Shown here: positions 7,611 to 29,910 of the stretch, one piece after another
Numbering within the stretch: the first letter of the stretch is position 1
Layout of the letters: every line of letters begins with the position of its first letter
Program-made: the position numbers and the translations under genes
Sequence record: NC_041917.1
DNA: 64,000 nt
Reading direction: 5' to 3' (one strand)
Notes under the pieces: generated by a model
What the model was told of the DNA's origin: nothing
The model's database searches: none
The model's input: the letters and a program-made list of their open reading frames with translations, nothing else

Positions 7611-7842
7611 ACATTTAGATGAAATAATTCAACTATTAACGGATGAATCAGATACTTATATTAGTACTGTTAAGTTTTTACATTCGATGATGATTGAAGC
7701 TAAAGAAGCTGGTACATATAACAGAAAGGATTTTAGTGCTGCATTATTAGTGCATAATTGCTTACGTAATAAGTACAAGCAAGATTTTAACGGCGAATTA
7801 CTTTCTTGGTATCGTCGTTTTATAGGACTATACGACAACTAA
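7597..7842 (+). CDS. Hypothetical protein
   Basis: TTG start behind AAGGA. Confidence 0.55.
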   Translation: MSTHKHLDEIIQLLTDESDTYISTVKFLHSMMIEAKEAGTYNRKDFSAALLVHNCLRNKYKQDFNGELLSWYRRFIGLYDN

Positions 7843-7852
7843 TAGGGAACAT

Positions 7853-8407
7853 ATGAAAAATACAATCATTGTGAACTTAGTTGGTGGACCATGTTGCGGT
7901 AAGAGTACTACCGCAGCAGGACTATTCGCTAAGATGAAATTACATACTAAGCAACAAGTTGAAATCGTAACAGAAGTCATTAAAGATTATGTATACGATG
8001 AAAATAAAATGGCTATGCAAGATCAAGTACTAATTACTGCAAACCAAAATCACCGCCTATTCCGGTTAAAAGGAAAGGTGGATTTTGTCGTTTCTGATGC
8101 TTCCCTTTTGAACGGAATTGTATATAATGAGTTTTATCATGACATGGAAAATATCAGTTCAAGAGTAGCATTTCAATTGTACGAACAGTACGAGAATATA
8201 GTATTTTTGCTTCCACGTAAACCAGAATACGATCAGTATGGTCGTACACAAACACTTGAAGAAGCAAAAGAACTTGACCGTTTATTTGTTGAAAATTTAG
8301 AACATTTACGTATTCCATATATTGATATGCGTGAATACACACATGAAGAAATGCCTGATCGTATTCTTGATGTTCTAAGCAATCGTTTTGGATTTGACGT
8401 TCATTAA
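7853..8407 (+). CDS. NadR-like AAA_28 P-loop ATPase/kinase
   Basis: GGPCCGKST Walker A; VVSDASLL; GRTQTLEEAKELD. Confidence 0.7.
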   Translation: MKNTIIVNLVGGPCCGKSTTAAGLFAKMKLHTKQQVEIVTEVIKDYVYDENKMAMQDQVLITANQNHRLFRLKGKVDFVVSDASLLNGIVYNEFYHDMENISSRVAFQLYEQYENIVFLLPRKPEYDQYGRTQTLEEAKELDRLFVENLEHLRIPYIDMREYTHEEMPDRILDVLSNRFGFDVH

Positions 8408-8465
8408 AAATTATATTTTATCAACTTTTTTATATTGGGTAAACGTTGACCTAAGTATTAAAAAC

Positions 8466-8508
8466 TTGATCTAGATCAAAGATAATACCCCTTCATATGG
8501 GGTATTAT
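8466..8508 (+). promoter_or_regulatory. FNR box (TTGAT-CTAG-ATCAA) plus -10 TATTAT: class II FNR-type promoter for nrdD
   Basis: Exact TTGAT-N4-ATCAA at 8466-8479; TATTAT at 8503-8508, placing the box centre near -41.5/-42.5. Confidence 0.75.
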
Positions 8509-8555
8509 ATATTTTAAGTGCGTAAATAATTCACCTTAACAGACACGGAGCGTCA

Positions 8556-10379
8556 ATGATGAATAATGATAGATTGTATAGTGACATTAACGAATTTCTA
8601 AACCAAAGTAATAAAGATCTTCTAAATGAGAATGCTAACAAAGATGCCAAGATTGTAAACACTCATAGAGACTTGCTTGCTGGCATTCTTTCCAAGCATT
8701 GGGCTGAAGATATTCTTTCTGAAGATTTAATGCAATGGCATAAAAATGGATATGGTCACATACATGATCTGGATTATTTTATTAGTCCTTTAACAAATTG
8801 TTGTTTAGTAAATTACAGAGATATGTTAGAGAATGGATTTAAAATCGGTAATGCACAAGTTGGAACTCCTAATAGTATTGGAGTTGCTAGTACTATATTG
8901 ACTCAAATTGTACTCGCCGTATCAGCTAGTCAATATGGAGGTCAAACATTAGCACATATTGACTATGGTCTTGAGCCATACGTTCAGAAGTCCTATGAGA
9001 AGCTACAGCAGCTTCAAACAGAATTCAACCTACCGGATGAATATGTGGAAAAAGCCTTACAGAAGGAAGTGTATGATGCTATGCAAGCCCTCTTGTATCA
9101 AGTTAACACCATCACGTCTAGTAATGGACAAACGCCATTTGTGACAATAAGTTTAGGATTAAATAAATCCAAATTTGGTCAAATGATAACTGATTCATAT
9201 TTGAAAGTACATGAAAAAGGTTTAGGTGTTGATGGCAATACTCCAGTATTTCCTAAAGTAGTTTTCTTCCTTGAAGATGGTGTTAATCTTAAACCTGAAG
9301 ATCCAAATTACTTTTTAAAAGAACAAGCTATGCGTACTGCATCCAAAAGAATATATCCAGACTTTGTTTCAGTACCATTGAATAGAAAGGTCACTGGTTC
9401 AAAAAGTGTTCCTGTATCACCAATGGGATGCCGTTCATTTTTAAGTAAATGGGAAGATGATAGCGGTACTGAACAGTATGATGGTAGATTCAATCTTGGT
9501 GTAGTTTCTATTAACTTACCACTACTTGCATTAGAATCCGAATCAGATGGTGATTTCTTTGGTAAGATCGATCATCATATGAATATGGCCTATAGAGCAC
9601 AGATGAACCGTGTAGAACGTCTTAAAAAGATGAAAGCACGTCAGAATCCAACAATGTTTATGGAAGGTGCAATTGCCCGTTTAGGAGCAGATGATACTAT
9701 TGATAAATTATTTTATGATGGATATGCTAGTATTAGTATTGGGTTCGTTGGATTAGCAGAATGTTCAGAAATCATAAAAGGGCATTTGAACAAAGATTAT
9801 TGTAAGTCTATTTTACATTATATGAAATATAAATGTGAACAATTCAAAAAGGACAGTACTTTATCATTTAGCTTATATGGAACACCAGCAGAAAGTTTAT
9901 GTTATAAATTTGCTAAATGTATCGAATTGAAGTATCCAAATGTTTTAAAACGTGACTTTATTACAAATTCATTCCATCAACCTGTGTGGGTAGAAAGTAC
10001 TCCATTTAGTAAGTGGGATTATGAAGAAAGTTTTGCATATCTAAGTAATGGTGGTAATATAAGTTACGTAGAAACACCAAATCTATCTAACAATATTAAG
10101 GCACTTGAAACCTTAATTGACTATGCGTATGATAGAATTCCATATTTTGGTATTAACCAACCAGTTGATAAATGCTATAAATGTGATTTTGAAGGTGAAT
10201 TTGCTGTAGATAAAATTGGTTTCCATTGTCCATCATGTGATAATAGAGAAGAAGGTACTATGTCAGTAATTAGACGAGTATCAGGTTATCTAAGTGCACC
10301 TAATAGTAGAGCGTTCAATACTGGAAAACAACAAGAAGTTATTCAGAGAGTAAAACATGAAAGACAATCGAAAGAATGA
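8556..10379 (+). CDS. nrdD: Anaerobic (class III) ribonucleoside-triphosphate reductase
   Basis: HIHDLDY, TNCCL, MGCRSFL, GRFNLGVVSINL, YGTPAESLC, CxxC...CxxC, RRVSGYL glycyl-radical loop. Confidence 0.97.
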   Translation: MMNNDRLYSDINEFLNQSNKDLLNENANKDAKIVNTHRDLLAGILSKHWAEDILSEDLMQWHKNGYGHIHDLDYFISPLTNCCLVNYRDMLENGFKIGNAQVGTPNSIGVASTILTQIVLAVSASQYGGQTLAHIDYGLEPYVQKSYEKLQQLQTEFNLPDEYVEKALQKEVYDAMQALLYQVNTITSSNGQTPFVTISLGLNKSKFGQMITDSYLKVHEKGLGVDGNTPVFPKVVFFLEDGVNLKPEDPNYFLKEQAMRTASKRIYPDFVSVPLNRKVTGSKSVPVSPMGCRSFLSKWEDDSGTEQYDGRFNLGVVSINLPLLALESESDGDFFGKIDHHMNMAYRAQMNRVERLKKMKARQNPTMFMEGAIARLGADDTIDKLFYDGYASISIGFVGLAECSEIIKGHLNKDYCKSILHYMKYKCEQFKKDSTLSFSLYGTPAESLCYKFAKCIELKYPNVLKRDFITNSFHQPVWVESTPFSKWDYEESFAYLSNGGNISYVETPNLSNNIKALETLIDYAYDRIPYFGINQPVDKCYKCDFEGEFAVDKIGFHCPSCDNREEGTMSVIRRVSGYLSAPNSRAFNTGKQQEVIQRVKHERQSKE

Positions 10380-10773
10380 AACTTGTTATCGTAGATGGGT
10401 GTTCGATAAGCCTAAAAACGGTAAGAAAAGAGAAAAAACATATTTTCCAAAGGGCAAGAAAATGCCCTTAAAAAAAGCATTTGATATTGTAGTGCAAGGA
10501 TTACTTGCAGGAAAAGGGTTACATCCATCCGTTGATTATATCTGGTACGCAGAGAAAATTTCAGCAGAATGTAATGTTCATGTTGATTTAGTTCGTCAAG
10601 TACTACATAAATTAAATCTAGAGGGATGTTGCTCTAAAAGAATACTGTGGGATGCTAGAGGTGGAATGTTCGCCATGCATACACGGTTAGATTGGGGTGA
10701 CGCAGTAGTTCCTTGGGAAGCAAAAGAGTATCATGTAAATATGGATAAACTTAAAGAGAAATATGGAAAATGA
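10357..10773 (+). CDS. Hypothetical protein
   Basis: 138-aa ORF overlapping the nrdD stop. Confidence 0.6.
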   Translation: MKDNRKNETCYRRWVFDKPKNGKKREKTYFPKGKKMPLKKAFDIVVQGLLAGKGLHPSVDYIWYAEKISAECNVHVDLVRQVLHKLNLEGCCSKRILWDARGGMFAMHTRLDWGDAVVPWEAKEYHVNMDKLKEKYGK

Positions 10774-10959
10774 TTCAATATGTAATTACTGAAGGAATAC
10801 ATACTGGAACTATATTTTCTATTATAATGTCAAGAAGTGTTGTTTTGAAATCTGACACTATTCCAGTTGGTACATTGCTATCAAATATACCAGATGATGA
10901 ACGCATGAAAATGAGATTTAGAGTTTATGATCCCAATTGATTTAAAAGAAAGAGAGAAT

Positions 10960-11436
10960 ATGATCTTATATTTCTCTCTTAAAAATAAGCATGGTTATTC
11001 ATTAGATAATTATGATGAAGTACTAGAACAATTAATTTCAGATCTTAAACCAAAAGTACAACAATATTATGCAATTATAATTCCTGAAAGTTCATCACCA
11101 TTTTTAGAAGATGTTGTTAAGCGATGTGGAAAACCATATATTATTGTAAAGAAAAATAATATACAGTACTTTAAAGATTTAGCACCAACATTAGGATTAC
11201 AAAAGGCTGAGCTTAAAAGTCATTTATCTAGAATGGATGACATGGGAGAATCTTTCAAAATTAATATGTTGAAAGCTACTCAGCGTGATAAGTACATTGA
11301 AAGTTTATTTTGTACTACAATCTCCCCTAACAATTCTATCATTATTGATGATAGTAATTTCTCTGGAAGTACCAAAAAGGCATTACAGTTTAGTACTGGA
11401 TGTTCTGAGTACTTACCAATTTTTACAAAAGGATAA
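10960..11436 (+). CDS. Phosphoribosyltransferase-fold-like protein
   Basis: [12 protein letters not shown] resembles the PRPP-binding loop. Confidence 0.4.
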
Positions 11437-11440
11437 TAAA

Positions 11441-11803
11441 ATGACAATCAAAGCAATTCAAATTCTACGTGGTGAACACGAAGGTACAATTTTGATTCAT
11501 GATGAAACAACTGCACGTGTAATTGTTTCCAAAACATTAGAAGAAGATTCTGAATTACCAATGGCACAATTTTGGGGTGAATCTGTTCGTGAGGTTAATA
11601 TCGAATATCCAACCTTAATTGAGGGTGGTCAGCATTTAAATGTTAACGTACTAACACGTGAACAATTGGAAGATGCACAACAAAATCCAGAAAAATATCC
11701 ACAACTAACTATTCGAGTTTCAGGTTATGCAGTTCGCTTTAACTCTTTAACCAAAGAACAGCAAGATGATGTAATTTCTAGAACTTTCACTACTAAGGTA
11801 TAA
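11441..11803 (+). CDS. grcA: Autonomous glycyl radical cofactor GrcA (YfiD / T4 Y06I-like)
   Basis: [11 protein letters not shown]...[35 protein letters not shown]. Start at ATG 11441. Confidence 0.93.
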
Positions 11804-11807
11804 TATT

Positions 11808-12254
11808 ATGATTCACGATAAGGTTAATACTTTATGGGGTCTTCGTTTTAATGATTCAGAATTACTTGGGTATCTTCCAGTATTTGATGAAGAACATAAG
11901 GCTATTTCATATTATTCATGTGAAAATATGCATCCTGAATATGAATATCGTCGAGTTGTCCCATGTTATCAGTACAAAGTATCTGAAGAATGGACTTCTT
12001 CTGAAGAAGATTTCTTTATGCAAGAAAAATTACCCAAAAAGTCTAGGGAAGATTTAGTACTTCAACATGAAATCTATCGTGATGATTATATCAAGAACTT
12101 CCAAGACAACAAATATGTTGTAATTTTTGTTGGTTGTGATGATGGGGATAAGGTGATGCGTTTCAAAGATAGAGAATCAGCAATCAAATTTTTGGAAGGT
12201 ATTACCTATTATGATGAAATTTTTGATGATATGCTACTAATGAGTAATTATTGA
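11808..12254 (+). CDS. Hypothetical protein
   Basis: 148-aa ORF in operon. Confidence 0.7.
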   Translation: MIHDKVNTLWGLRFNDSELLGYLPVFDEEHKAISYYSCENMHPEYEYRRVVPCYQYKVSEEWTSSEEDFFMQEKLPKKSREDLVLQHEIYRDDYIKNFQDNKYVVIFVGCDDGDKVMRFKDRESAIKFLEGITYYDEIFDDMLLMSNY

Positions 12255-12727
12255 TGAACTATCAAACAATAGTGAAAGATGATTTGATTAATGGAACTGG
12301 CGTTCGCGTCAGTTTATATGTTTCTGGATGCAGTCATGGATGTGCTGGGTGTTTTAATGAATCAGCATGGGATTATCGTTCAGGAATACCATTTAGTACT
12401 GAACAAATCAATGATATTCGAATTGAATTATCAAAATCTTATGTTGAAGGATTAACACTTTTAGGTGGAGATCCTTTAATGCCAAAGAATATTGATACAG
12501 TACTAGAATTATGTAGAATCGTTAAAGAAGAATTTCCAGATAAAAACATATGGTGCTGGACTGGATATACATTAGAGCAAGTACTTTCCAATCACGCACA
12601 TGATGCATTACAATATATTGATGTATTAGTAGATGGAAAATTTGAGGAAGAATTAAAAAATCTAAAATTATCATTTAGAGGTTCAGAAAATCAAAGAGTA
12701 CTTTTTAAAGGAAAGGACTATGACTAA
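12254..12727 (+). CDS. nrdG: Anaerobic RNR activating enzyme (radical SAM)
   Basis: NGTGVRVSLYVSGCSHGCAGCFN (CxxxCxxC); GLTLLGGDPL; FRGSENQR. Confidence 0.96.
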   Translation: MNYQTIVKDDLINGTGVRVSLYVSGCSHGCAGCFNESAWDYRSGIPFSTEQINDIRIELSKSYVEGLTLLGGDPLMPKNIDTVLELCRIVKEEFPDKNIWCWTGYTLEQVLSNHAHDALQYIDVLVDGKFEEELKNLKLSFRGSENQRVLFKGKDYD

Positions 12728-12899
12728 AGAAGTTATTGTTTATGATAAGAAATTTCATGAAGATGAAATAGAAATGATTGATCCGATGGATTTTTTAACA
12801 GATGATGTTGTAACTGATGTATTTGGACTACCACGAGGAACGTTTCATGTAGTGGTTACATTTACACCAGATCCAAATTATGATCCAGATGAAGAATAG
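12720..12899 (+). CDS. Small acidic protein (59 aa)
   Basis: AGGA RBS; MTKEVIVYDKKFHEDEIE...YDPDEE. Confidence 0.55.
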   Translation: MTKEVIVYDKKFHEDEIEMIDPMDFLTDDVVTDVFGLPRGTFHVVVTFTPDPNYDPDEE

Positions 12900-12921
12900 G
12901 CACCCATAGGGTGCCTTTTTT
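12898..12921 (+). terminator. Terminator of the nrdD-nrdG operon
   Basis: AGGCACC-catag-GGTGCCT plus T run. Confidence 0.8.
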
Positions 12922-29544: not shown

Positions 29545-29910
29545 ATGTTAGAATTTATTAAGTTATACAAATGGCCTATCGGGTTAGCAGCATTCTTACT
29601 ATACACAGTACTAATGCTATTTTCTGGCTGGCAAGTACATACCTATTATGTTGGTTATCAACAAAATATTGAACAAAAAATAGAAAAGATAGTAGATAAT
29701 GGAGTTAGAAATTATCAACAAAATCAAGCTAAGGGTCTTGAAGATACAAAATCATTATTAGATAATGCTAGAGTTAATACAATTATTAAAGAACCAACAA
29801 TAATAAACCGACCAATCTATATGCAACAATGTATGGATCAAGCTGGTGTAGATTTGTTGAAACAATATAAATTGGACTCTAAAGCAGCAATAGAAGGAAC
29901 TAAAAAATGA
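29545..29910 (+). CDS. i-spanin (Rz-like)
   Basis: N-terminal TM then coiled periplasmic region; TAAATA upstream; overlaps a lipoprotein gene. Confidence 0.7.
   Translation: MLEFIKLYKWPIGLAAFLLYTVLMLFSGWQVHTYYVGYQQNIEQKIEKIVDNGVRNYQQNQAKGLEDTKSLLDNARVNTIIKEPTIINRPIYMQQCMDQAGVDLLKQYKLDSKAAIEGTKK

Follow-up and report, generated by a model that had tools for sequence, protein, structure and literature searches.

The locus described here raises the question whether a virulent phage has placed the genes of its anaerobic ribonucleotide reductase under the oxygen sensor of its host. The DNA analysed, referred to below as the window, is a stretch of 64,000 nucleotides from record NC_041917, the genome of Serratia phage BF (genus Eneladusvirus), a Rak2-like jumbo myovirus with a genome of 357 kb. 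Window positions equal BF genome positions minus 62,000, and the region 7800-11500 of the window is 100% identical to BF. A sequence with the appearance of an FNR box is located in the 148 nt that separate nrdD from a thymidylate-kinase-like AAA gene ending at 8407. The preliminary description of this DNA had guessed a facultatively anaerobic gammaproteobacterial host, and the BF record names such a host, the facultatively anaerobic enterobacterium Serratia marcescens. Enterobacterales carry fnr. The phage itself gave no FNR homologue in a tblastn search with the E. coli protein (noise only, E above 1), and no Crp/Fnr-type regulator is named in the BF annotation outside about 54 kb of the window's stretch. 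BF also encodes the aerobic reductase, nrdAB. The host counterparts of the genes behind the box are linked to FNR, as had been stated for E. coli: the host nrdDG operon is FNR-activated (PMC2892513) and yfiD/grcA is listed in the FNR regulon table (PMC3688515).

An operon nrdD-grcA-nrdG had been proposed downstream of the box. All three genes are present, all on the plus strand; their order is interrupted by small ORFs, three between nrdD and grcA and one between grcA and nrdG. The first gene, nrdD (8556-10379), codes for a class III anaerobic ribonucleotide reductase (Pfam NRDD PF13597, E 1e-159; Gly_radical). Its start is more likely the ATG at 8559 (ATGAATAA...) than the annotated in-frame ATG at 8556, judging from the alignment with relatives. 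The ribosome-binding region GACAyGGAGnGTC (8542-8554, plus strand, GGAG at 8547-8550) is conserved in the alignment of related phages; it is near-invariant in all Rak2-like lineages, which exceeds the need of a plain ribosome-binding site, and has GAC...GTC symmetry. The three small ORFs that follow nrdD (10357-10773, 10770-10940 and 10927-11436) have no Pfam match, and in relatives they are absent or replaced. Next comes a GrcA/YfiD-type autonomous glycyl-radical cofactor (11441-11803; Gly_radical, E 1e-17), whose best solved relative is GrcA (PDB 6owr, E 7e-30) and which also matches the C-terminus of pyruvate formate-lyase (E 4e-27). GrcA serves as a spare part of pyruvate formate-lyase. 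Origin of this gene as a copy of the NrdD C-terminus was considered and rejected by sequence comparison. An ORF of 148 amino acids (11808-12254) is kept beside nrdG in relatives, some of which carry a DNA methyltransferase gene, or in Pectobacterium phage CBB a gene labelled "structural protein", between the two (L002 6878-7621, L004 5360-6124, L005 4894-5637; L numbers denote individual loci or lineages). The activase gene nrdG (12254-12727) codes for the radical-SAM partner of NrdD (Fer4_12, E 1e-51; Radical_SAM). The last member of the unit is, by ORF list and annotation, a small ORF of 59 amino acids (12720-12899), and a strong terminator-like hairpin with T-run, at 12898-12916 on the plus strand, closes the unit. 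Its equivalent in CBB is Torf146, and the CBB promoter and terminator tables hold no entry for the nrdD leader (PMC5259590).

The box itself (TTGATCTAGATCAA, 8466-8479, no strand assigned) is a perfect 14-bp palindrome with centre at 8472.5, composed of TTGAT and ATCAA around CTAG. It carries T (TTGA, as in FNR sites) at the position where CRP sites have G (GTGA). All ten specified bases of the FNR consensus TTGATnnnnATCAA are matched (10/10; consensus according to PMC3688515), so that the exact match claimed in the preliminary description is indeed there, and it is the sole one in the window. The single exact match is not above chance by itself: 0.46 exact boxes are expected per window, at least one occurs in 36% of shuffles, and sites with one mismatch show no enrichment either (12 found, 9.1 expected). 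A scan of the whole BF genome, which had been suggested as a check, gave three exact boxes against about 2.2 expected, of which the one in the nrdD leader is the only intergenic one. The other two, at genome positions 296175 and 299096, are located inside small genes in a tRNA-rich region and fit chance. A palindromic box with one mismatch (TTGATTTAATTCAA) is found at genome position 286294 (L149 10294-10307) in an intergenic gap of 340 nt, with no convincing -10 hexamer at class II distance. No further convincing composite of box and -10 was found in the BF genome, and a phage-wide FNR regulon was rejected, with exact and 1-mismatch boxes at chance level in the window and exact boxes at chance level genome-wide. 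What goes beyond chance is the position of the box and its conservation. The chance of a random box falling within the 148-nt leader of nrdD is roughly 1e-3, a post hoc estimate for which the prior expectation was set by the host nrdDG and yfiD promoters.

Conservation upstream of nrdD in related phages, one of the checks proposed for this site, was assessed on nrdD loci taken from GenBank phages and IMG/VR. The box is kept in 11 of the 11 Rak2-like lineages examined, 73-89 nt from the nrdD ATG. These lineages comprise phages of Serratia, Erwinia, Yersinia, Pectobacterium, Cronobacter, Escherichia and Salmonella type together with metagenomic contigs, and the identity of their NrdD proteins is as low as 72%. 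The CTAG core is present in BF, Yersinia phages fHe-Yen9-03/04 (Yen9), CBB, Cronobacter phage GAP32, L009/L012 (about 92% identical to Erwinia phage Kaldavass) and L023; it is kept in 7/10 aligned lineages, and the other centres are CCAG, TTAT and ATAG. Boxes with diverged sequence include those of L019 (TTGATCCAGATCAA; distantly similar to Erwinia phage Hallingskeid), L020 (TTGATCTAGGTCAA; about 80% identical to Salmonella phage Munch), L022 (TTGATTTATATCAA) and E. coli phage 121Q (TTGATATAGGTCAA). In the alignment of ten sequences, pairwise identity is 1.0 at 8466-8470 (5/5 positions of the left half-site) and at 8476-8479 (4/5 of the right one), compared with 0.2-0.6 in the flanks, and the central 4 bp are variable. 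Contact bases are thus kept above their flanks and non-contact bases are free, as in a phylogenetic footprint. FNR reads the half-sites of its box, and fixed half-sites around a free centre are, as far as sequence can tell, the pattern expected of FNR; the comparison argues for a genuine site maintained by selection. A conserved Dam/GATC or CTAG motif was rejected as the explanation because the half-sites are fixed and the central bases variable: both motifs are gone in L022 and 121Q, in which the FNR half-sites are still there.

Several other observations concern the surroundings of the box. In the Yersinia phages, a gene of 1137 bp is inserted after the kinase gene (L002 2579-3715), and the box still adjoins nrdD. 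The motif AAACGTTRAYC (8440-8451), 15-25 nt upstream of the box, is kept in BF, Yen9, CBB, GAP32 and L009 and missing in L019, L020, L023 and 121Q, and no matching -10 was found for it; TTGACC (8446-8451) was likewise discarded as a -35 hexamer, being neither conserved nor accompanied by a matching -10. Phage XbC2 (OP292654), recorded on Xanthomonas vesicatoria, shares 91% identity with L009 over nrdD and the leader. With Xanthomonas regarded as an obligate aerobe, this record weighs against FNR control; it reflects either an odd host range or label, or an anaerobic operon carried unused.

A candidate sigma70 -10 hexamer, TATTAT, is located at 8503-8508 (plus strand), 23 nt after the box, and from it class II FNR geometry had been proposed. 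With the hexamer set at -12 to -7, transcription is predicted to start at 8515 and the box centre falls at -42.5, or at -41.5 if the start is 8514. Among FNR-activated E. coli promoters, 19 of 23 have the site centre at -41.5 +/- 4, for example yfiD and focA-pflB at -40.5 and fnrS at -42.5, and class I FNR promoters are rare (1/23; PMC3688515). TATTAT matches the -10 consensus at 4/6 positions, with A at -11 and T at -7 present, and no -35 hexamer accompanies it in BF; T8503 and T8508 are invariant in the alignment. Relatives offer better hexamers: in L019, L020 and L023, TGnTATAAT follows the box at exactly 23 nt, the offset of TATTAT in BF, and 121Q has TATAAT 22 nt after it. Lineages with the perfect TATAAT thus place the box centre at -41.5 or -42.5 relative to their predicted starts. 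The promoter scan called GGGACA-17-TATAAT in L019 and L020, and the extended form GGGACA-17-TGnTATAAT of L019, L020 and L023 has 10/12 matches; promoters of these three may be partly FNR-independent. Elsewhere the hexamer reads TATTAT (BF, CBB), TATTTT (GAP32, L009), TTGAAT (Yen9) or TTTTTT (L022), and in the last two the critical A at -11 is lacking, with box and TAAATA intact.

The same hexamer is also the 3' arm of a terminator-like hairpin found by terminator scan at 8482-8508 (plus strand), with a stem of 10 bp, a loop of 7 nt and a U-rich tail at 8509-8517. Its folding energy is -14.5 kcal/mol (z = -3.8 against shuffles), and 4/10 pairs stay paired through changes on both sides among seven lineages. 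Because of this fold score and the compensatory changes, we take the hairpin to be maintained by selection; its simplest role would be to end transcription of the genes upstream. It has the GC-containing stem-loop, the U-tract and the conserved structure of an intrinsic terminator; the U-tract is interrupted in BF (ATATTTT) and cleaner in L022, L009 and GAP32. Lineages without this hairpin have another terminator (AAAAGCACCC...GGGTGCTTTT) roughly 40 nt ahead of the box, so that a terminator precedes the promoter in every Rak2-like lineage examined. The nrdD unit is therefore insulated in all of them and requires a promoter of its own. In the BF/CBB/GAP32 lineage the terminator appears to fill the spacer and the -10 of the presumed class II promoter, the spacer being free sequence there, and a weaker -10 would be the cost. 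The BF leader would then be a compact natural case in which promoter and terminator occupy one and the same stretch of 30 bp.

The preliminary interpretation can be kept in part. The distances of -41.5/-42.5 follow both from TATTAT and from TATAAT of the relatives; TATTAT, for its part, doubles as a hairpin arm and has decayed in two relatives. Since the -10 is lost in Yen9 and L022 with the box kept, the class II start in the hairpin-bearing lineage may be weak or unused. In the best-supported reading, host FNR binds the box under anoxia and activates the operon, and the class II sigma70 arrangement, clearest in the hairpin-less relatives, is ancestral; BF itself may start at 8514-8515, at about 8534, or at both.

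Downstream of both elements lies TAAATA (8523-8528, plus strand; GTAAATAA in BF), a candidate T4-type late promoter. It is invariant (identity 1.0), starts exactly 43 nt after the box in 11/11 Rak2-like lineages, 20 bp or two helical turns downstream of TATTAT, and precedes the nrdD ATG by 33 nt. Phage 121Q keeps the distance of 43 nt even with its TATAAT displaced by 1 nt and with unalignable sequence between box and TAAATA. Transcription from this motif is predicted to start about 6 nt after it (near 8534), which puts the box at about -61.5, in class I phase. The earlier suggestion that TAAATA at 8523 could give a late input agrees with the late-promoter motif of this phage. Intergenic DNA of BF is strongly enriched in [A>C,G,T]TAAATA, most copies of which stand 30-45 nt upstream of a start codon; ATAAATA is 18-fold denser in intergenic than in coding DNA, and a gp55-like late sigma factor is annotated. 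The authors of the CBB genome analysis proposed the TAAATA motif as a T4-like late promoter (PMC5259590). GTAAATAA agrees with the T4 late consensus TATAAATA at 6/8 positions, and the base before TAAATA at nrdD is G, C or T across lineages, as opposed to the preferred A. Across BF, a terminator T-run is often followed at once by late-type [A/C/G]TAAATA (TTTTTTCGTAAATA), for example around window position 29545 (genome 91545), as is the case at nrdD; terminator and subsequent late promoter look like a recurrent punctuation unit.

Similar composites of box and -10 precede nrdD in phages unrelated to the Rak2-like group. In Stephanstirmvirinae, four boxes, each with one mismatch, are located 21-22 nt before TAAAAT: phiWec179 (L063 ~420-470) has TTGATCCTGAACAA, 21 nt and TGgTAAAAT, Klebsiella phage 05F01 (L064 ~112-160) has TTGATTAAGATCAT, 22 nt and TAAAAT, and L069 (~497-545) and L070 have TTGACTAAGATCAA, 22 nt and TAAAAT. 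Vibrio phage ICP1 (L067 ~150-200) has a symmetric box with two mismatches (TTGACACAAGTCAA), 22 nt and TGgTATAAT. Control sequence yields 0.02-0.03 such composites per 220 nt, at thresholds that were set after the first cases had been seen. FNR-wired nrdD promoters thus appear, on prediction, to recur in unrelated phage groups. They are not universal: none of the 37 nrdD loci of T4-like phages showed a credible box (a match with two mismatches and a poor hexamer occurs in one clade), no FNR box precedes nrdD in the T5-like phage DT571/2 and in a Felix-O1-like phage, and the composite is missing in most distant relatives of ICP1 NrdD from metagenomes with unknown hosts. The Vequintavirus locus L143 is uninformative, as its gene extends upstream beyond the flank examined. 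DT571/2 (L065 ~390-425) has a near-consensus constitutive TTGACA-17-TATAAT and a long structured leader, a different solution for the same gene. In Stephanstirmvirinae, the nrdD leader carries a terminator-like hairpin with T-run, downstream of the predicted -10 and ahead of the ribosome-binding site (L064 ~165-190, L069 ~552-580), which may act as an attenuator.

We propose that the box is a selectively maintained site for the [4Fe-4S] FNR dimer of the host and gives the nrdD-grcA-nrdG unit an oxygen response, an explanation that we consider probable, with a good deal of room for doubt. Transcription of the upstream nucleotide-metabolism genes would end at the hairpin and U-tract (8482-8517), and the unit would use its own promoter. 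This promoter has no usable -35; anaerobically active FNR at 8466-8479 would recruit the host sigma70 polymerase in class II mode, with TATTAT (8503-8508) as -10 and a start near 8514-8515, provided that its contacts with FNR survive phage modification of the polymerase. The same bound FNR, at about -61.5 from the TAAATA start, could assist late transcription or at least not hinder it. The result would be a terminator-bracketed, oxygen-responsive unit from about 8.5 to 12.9 kb of the window, in which GrcA and the oxygen-labile NrdD would be made only when workable, with aerobic nrdAB serving otherwise. Oxic and anoxic cells alike contain FNR protein, on whose activity oxygen acts through the iron-sulfur cluster. 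The phage could therefore read oxygen at once, without new host expression, which would suit a lytic virus that turns off the genes of its host. An oxygen-dependent choice of reductase makes sense because BF carries aerobic nrdAB as well. FNR binding, activation and the start sites are predictions, drawn from the observed sequence, conservation, geometry, hairpin and gene content.

An alternative that keeps FNR as the bound protein moves the productive start. In BF and the rest of the hairpin-bearing lineage, transcription would begin at the TAAATA late promoter (about 8534), FNR would act at about -61.5 in a class I-type manner, through the alpha C-terminal domain or by stabilising the polymerase, and TATTAT would be a terminator arm only. 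The fixed distance between box and TAAATA in all 11 lineages, including 121Q with its shifted TATAAT, speaks in its favour, as do the decay of the sigma70 -10 in Yen9 and L022, where the box is retained, and the enrichment of the late motif before genes in a phage that encodes a gp55-like sigma (PMC5259590). We nevertheless hold it unlikely. The base before TAAATA at nrdD is not the preferred A, class I FNR promoters are the exception noted above (PMC3688515), and boxes of Stephanstirmvirinae and ICP1 stand at class II distance from good sigma70 -10 hexamers, with an equally placed TAAATA missing there; only phiWec179 has one, 1 nt closer. A T4-type late promoter that uses a host activator is moreover not known to us. 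A bolder combination, to which we would give little chance, is that FNR gates the gp55-type late promoter from about -61.5 and that this promoter and the class II sigma70 start form a dual-sigma, oxygen-gated module, adopted separately for nrdD by jumbo phages, Stephanstirmvirinae and ICP1. It is suggested by the box-TAAATA distance of 43 nt, fixed while the intervening sequence changed, and if true it would present the first T4-type late promoter depending on a host activator.

The palindrome could instead be the operator of another dimeric protein, either a phage regulator or another host member of the Crp/Fnr family, with the match to FNR coincidental or a partial mimicry. A perfect 14-bp palindrome would suit such a protein, most of the 580 phage genes are without known function, and the frequent CTAG centre goes beyond any known need of FNR. 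Yet the invariant bases are exactly those that specify FNR, and the centre does vary; unrelated phage families with different gene sets have FNR-like boxes equally far from a -10; the genome holds no second intergenic copy, as a set of operators might give; and neither tblastn nor the annotation, in the scope stated above, offered a Crp/Fnr homologue. We consider this reading improbable. A negative or neutral role of bound FNR, as a roadblock to upstream read-through or as repressor of TTAAAA-17-GATAAT (8458-8486), is very improbable. The promoter scan does find this 9/12 sigma70-like promoter with the box as its spacer, and FNR overlapping core promoter elements represses (PMC3688515). However, the element is not kept in Yen9, CBB, GAP32 or others, and for its lack of conservation it was also rejected as the promoter of the operon; its transcript would run into the terminator at once, shutting an anaerobic enzyme operon under anoxia would be physiologically senseless, and the kept spacing to downstream -10 elements favours activation. 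That the palindrome arose by chance, is neutral, or results from its content of methylation or restriction sites (two GATC, one CTAG) is hardly credible, for although 0.46 boxes per window and 2.2 per genome are expected and the phage encodes several DNA methyltransferases, the box has held its position while proteins diverged by more than 25% and flanks became unalignable, and L022 and 121Q lose GATC and CTAG and keep the half-sites.

Activation by host FNR, the reading that we prefer, has to our reading no precedent in phage nrdD. Literature searches found no report of FNR control of phage nrdD or of the BF site, and the literature searched on Rak2-like phages and ICP1 yielded no mention of FNR. 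Class II promoters activated by FNR are known, and so are metabolic genes of phages under host regulators; the setting is new. If confirmed, the locus would clearly exemplify a virulent phage that exploits a global regulator of its host as an instant oxygen sensor, by which it picks between two ribonucleotide reductase systems and tops up pyruvate formate-lyase via GrcA. The nrdD genes are probably switched on only in an infected cell that lacks oxygen. The hosts of Rak2-like jumbo phages, Stephanstirmvirinae and ICP1 are bacteria of the gut, of plant rot and of cholera-associated settings, and they alternate between oxic and anoxic niches. As the composite recurs in phages of such hosts, oxygen-conditional expression may be common among phages and relevant to their performance in the anoxic gut or in rotting tissue.

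Four known systems invite comparison. T4-type late promoters (TATAAATA, gp55 sigma) share with BF the TAAATA before a gene and an encoded gp55-like sigma. Unlike them, the nrdD motif has G, C or T upstream instead of A across lineages, and TAAATA of the Rak2-like phages stands at a fixed distance of 43 nt from an FNR box, an arrangement not known from T4 late promoters.

The host nrdDG promoter of E. coli and Salmonella, FNR-activated and NrdR-repressed, serves the same enzyme pair under the same predicted oxygen sensor (PMC2892513). The E. coli nrdD leader is long and has two imperfect boxes 31 bp apart (TTGAGCTACATCAA, TTGATGCAAAGCAC) and NrdR-like boxes, whereas BF has one perfect box, a short leader, no NrdR box and no sequence similarity to it. 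No match to an NrdR box pattern was found in or near 8400-8560, and the rest of the window gave two matches with three mismatches against four expected. These differences in boxes, NrdR sites and sequence point to the FNR wiring of the phage having been recruited independently, not captured with a host promoter. Among the phages themselves, the BF hairpin stands before the predicted start, as opposed to the hairpin of Stephanstirmvirinae in the leader after the -10.

E. coli class II FNR promoters (yfiD/grcA, focA-pflB, dmsA, narG, nirB, fnrS) resemble the BF promoter in the TTGATnnnnATCAA-type site about 41.5 (+/-1) bp before the predicted start, in the lack of a good -35 beside the site with a recognisable -10 after it, and in a cargo of anaerobic metabolism that includes a grcA homologue. 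The BF promoter differs from them in belonging to a virulent jumbo phage, with start and FNR control predicted from its sequence, in the perfect consensus of its box, which is rare in E. coli, and in having spacer and -10 that double as an intrinsic terminator hairpin.

Finally, cyanophages have pstS and phoA under pho boxes of the host regulator PhoB, and NtcA sites in their promoters. BF is similar to them in that a virulent phage, as predicted here, puts a metabolic operon under an environmental sensor of the host, for expression only when useful. It is unlike them in that the signal is oxygen, the regulator is of the Crp/Fnr type and the hosts belong to another group, and in that the BF site is a textbook consensus with a defined activation geometry.
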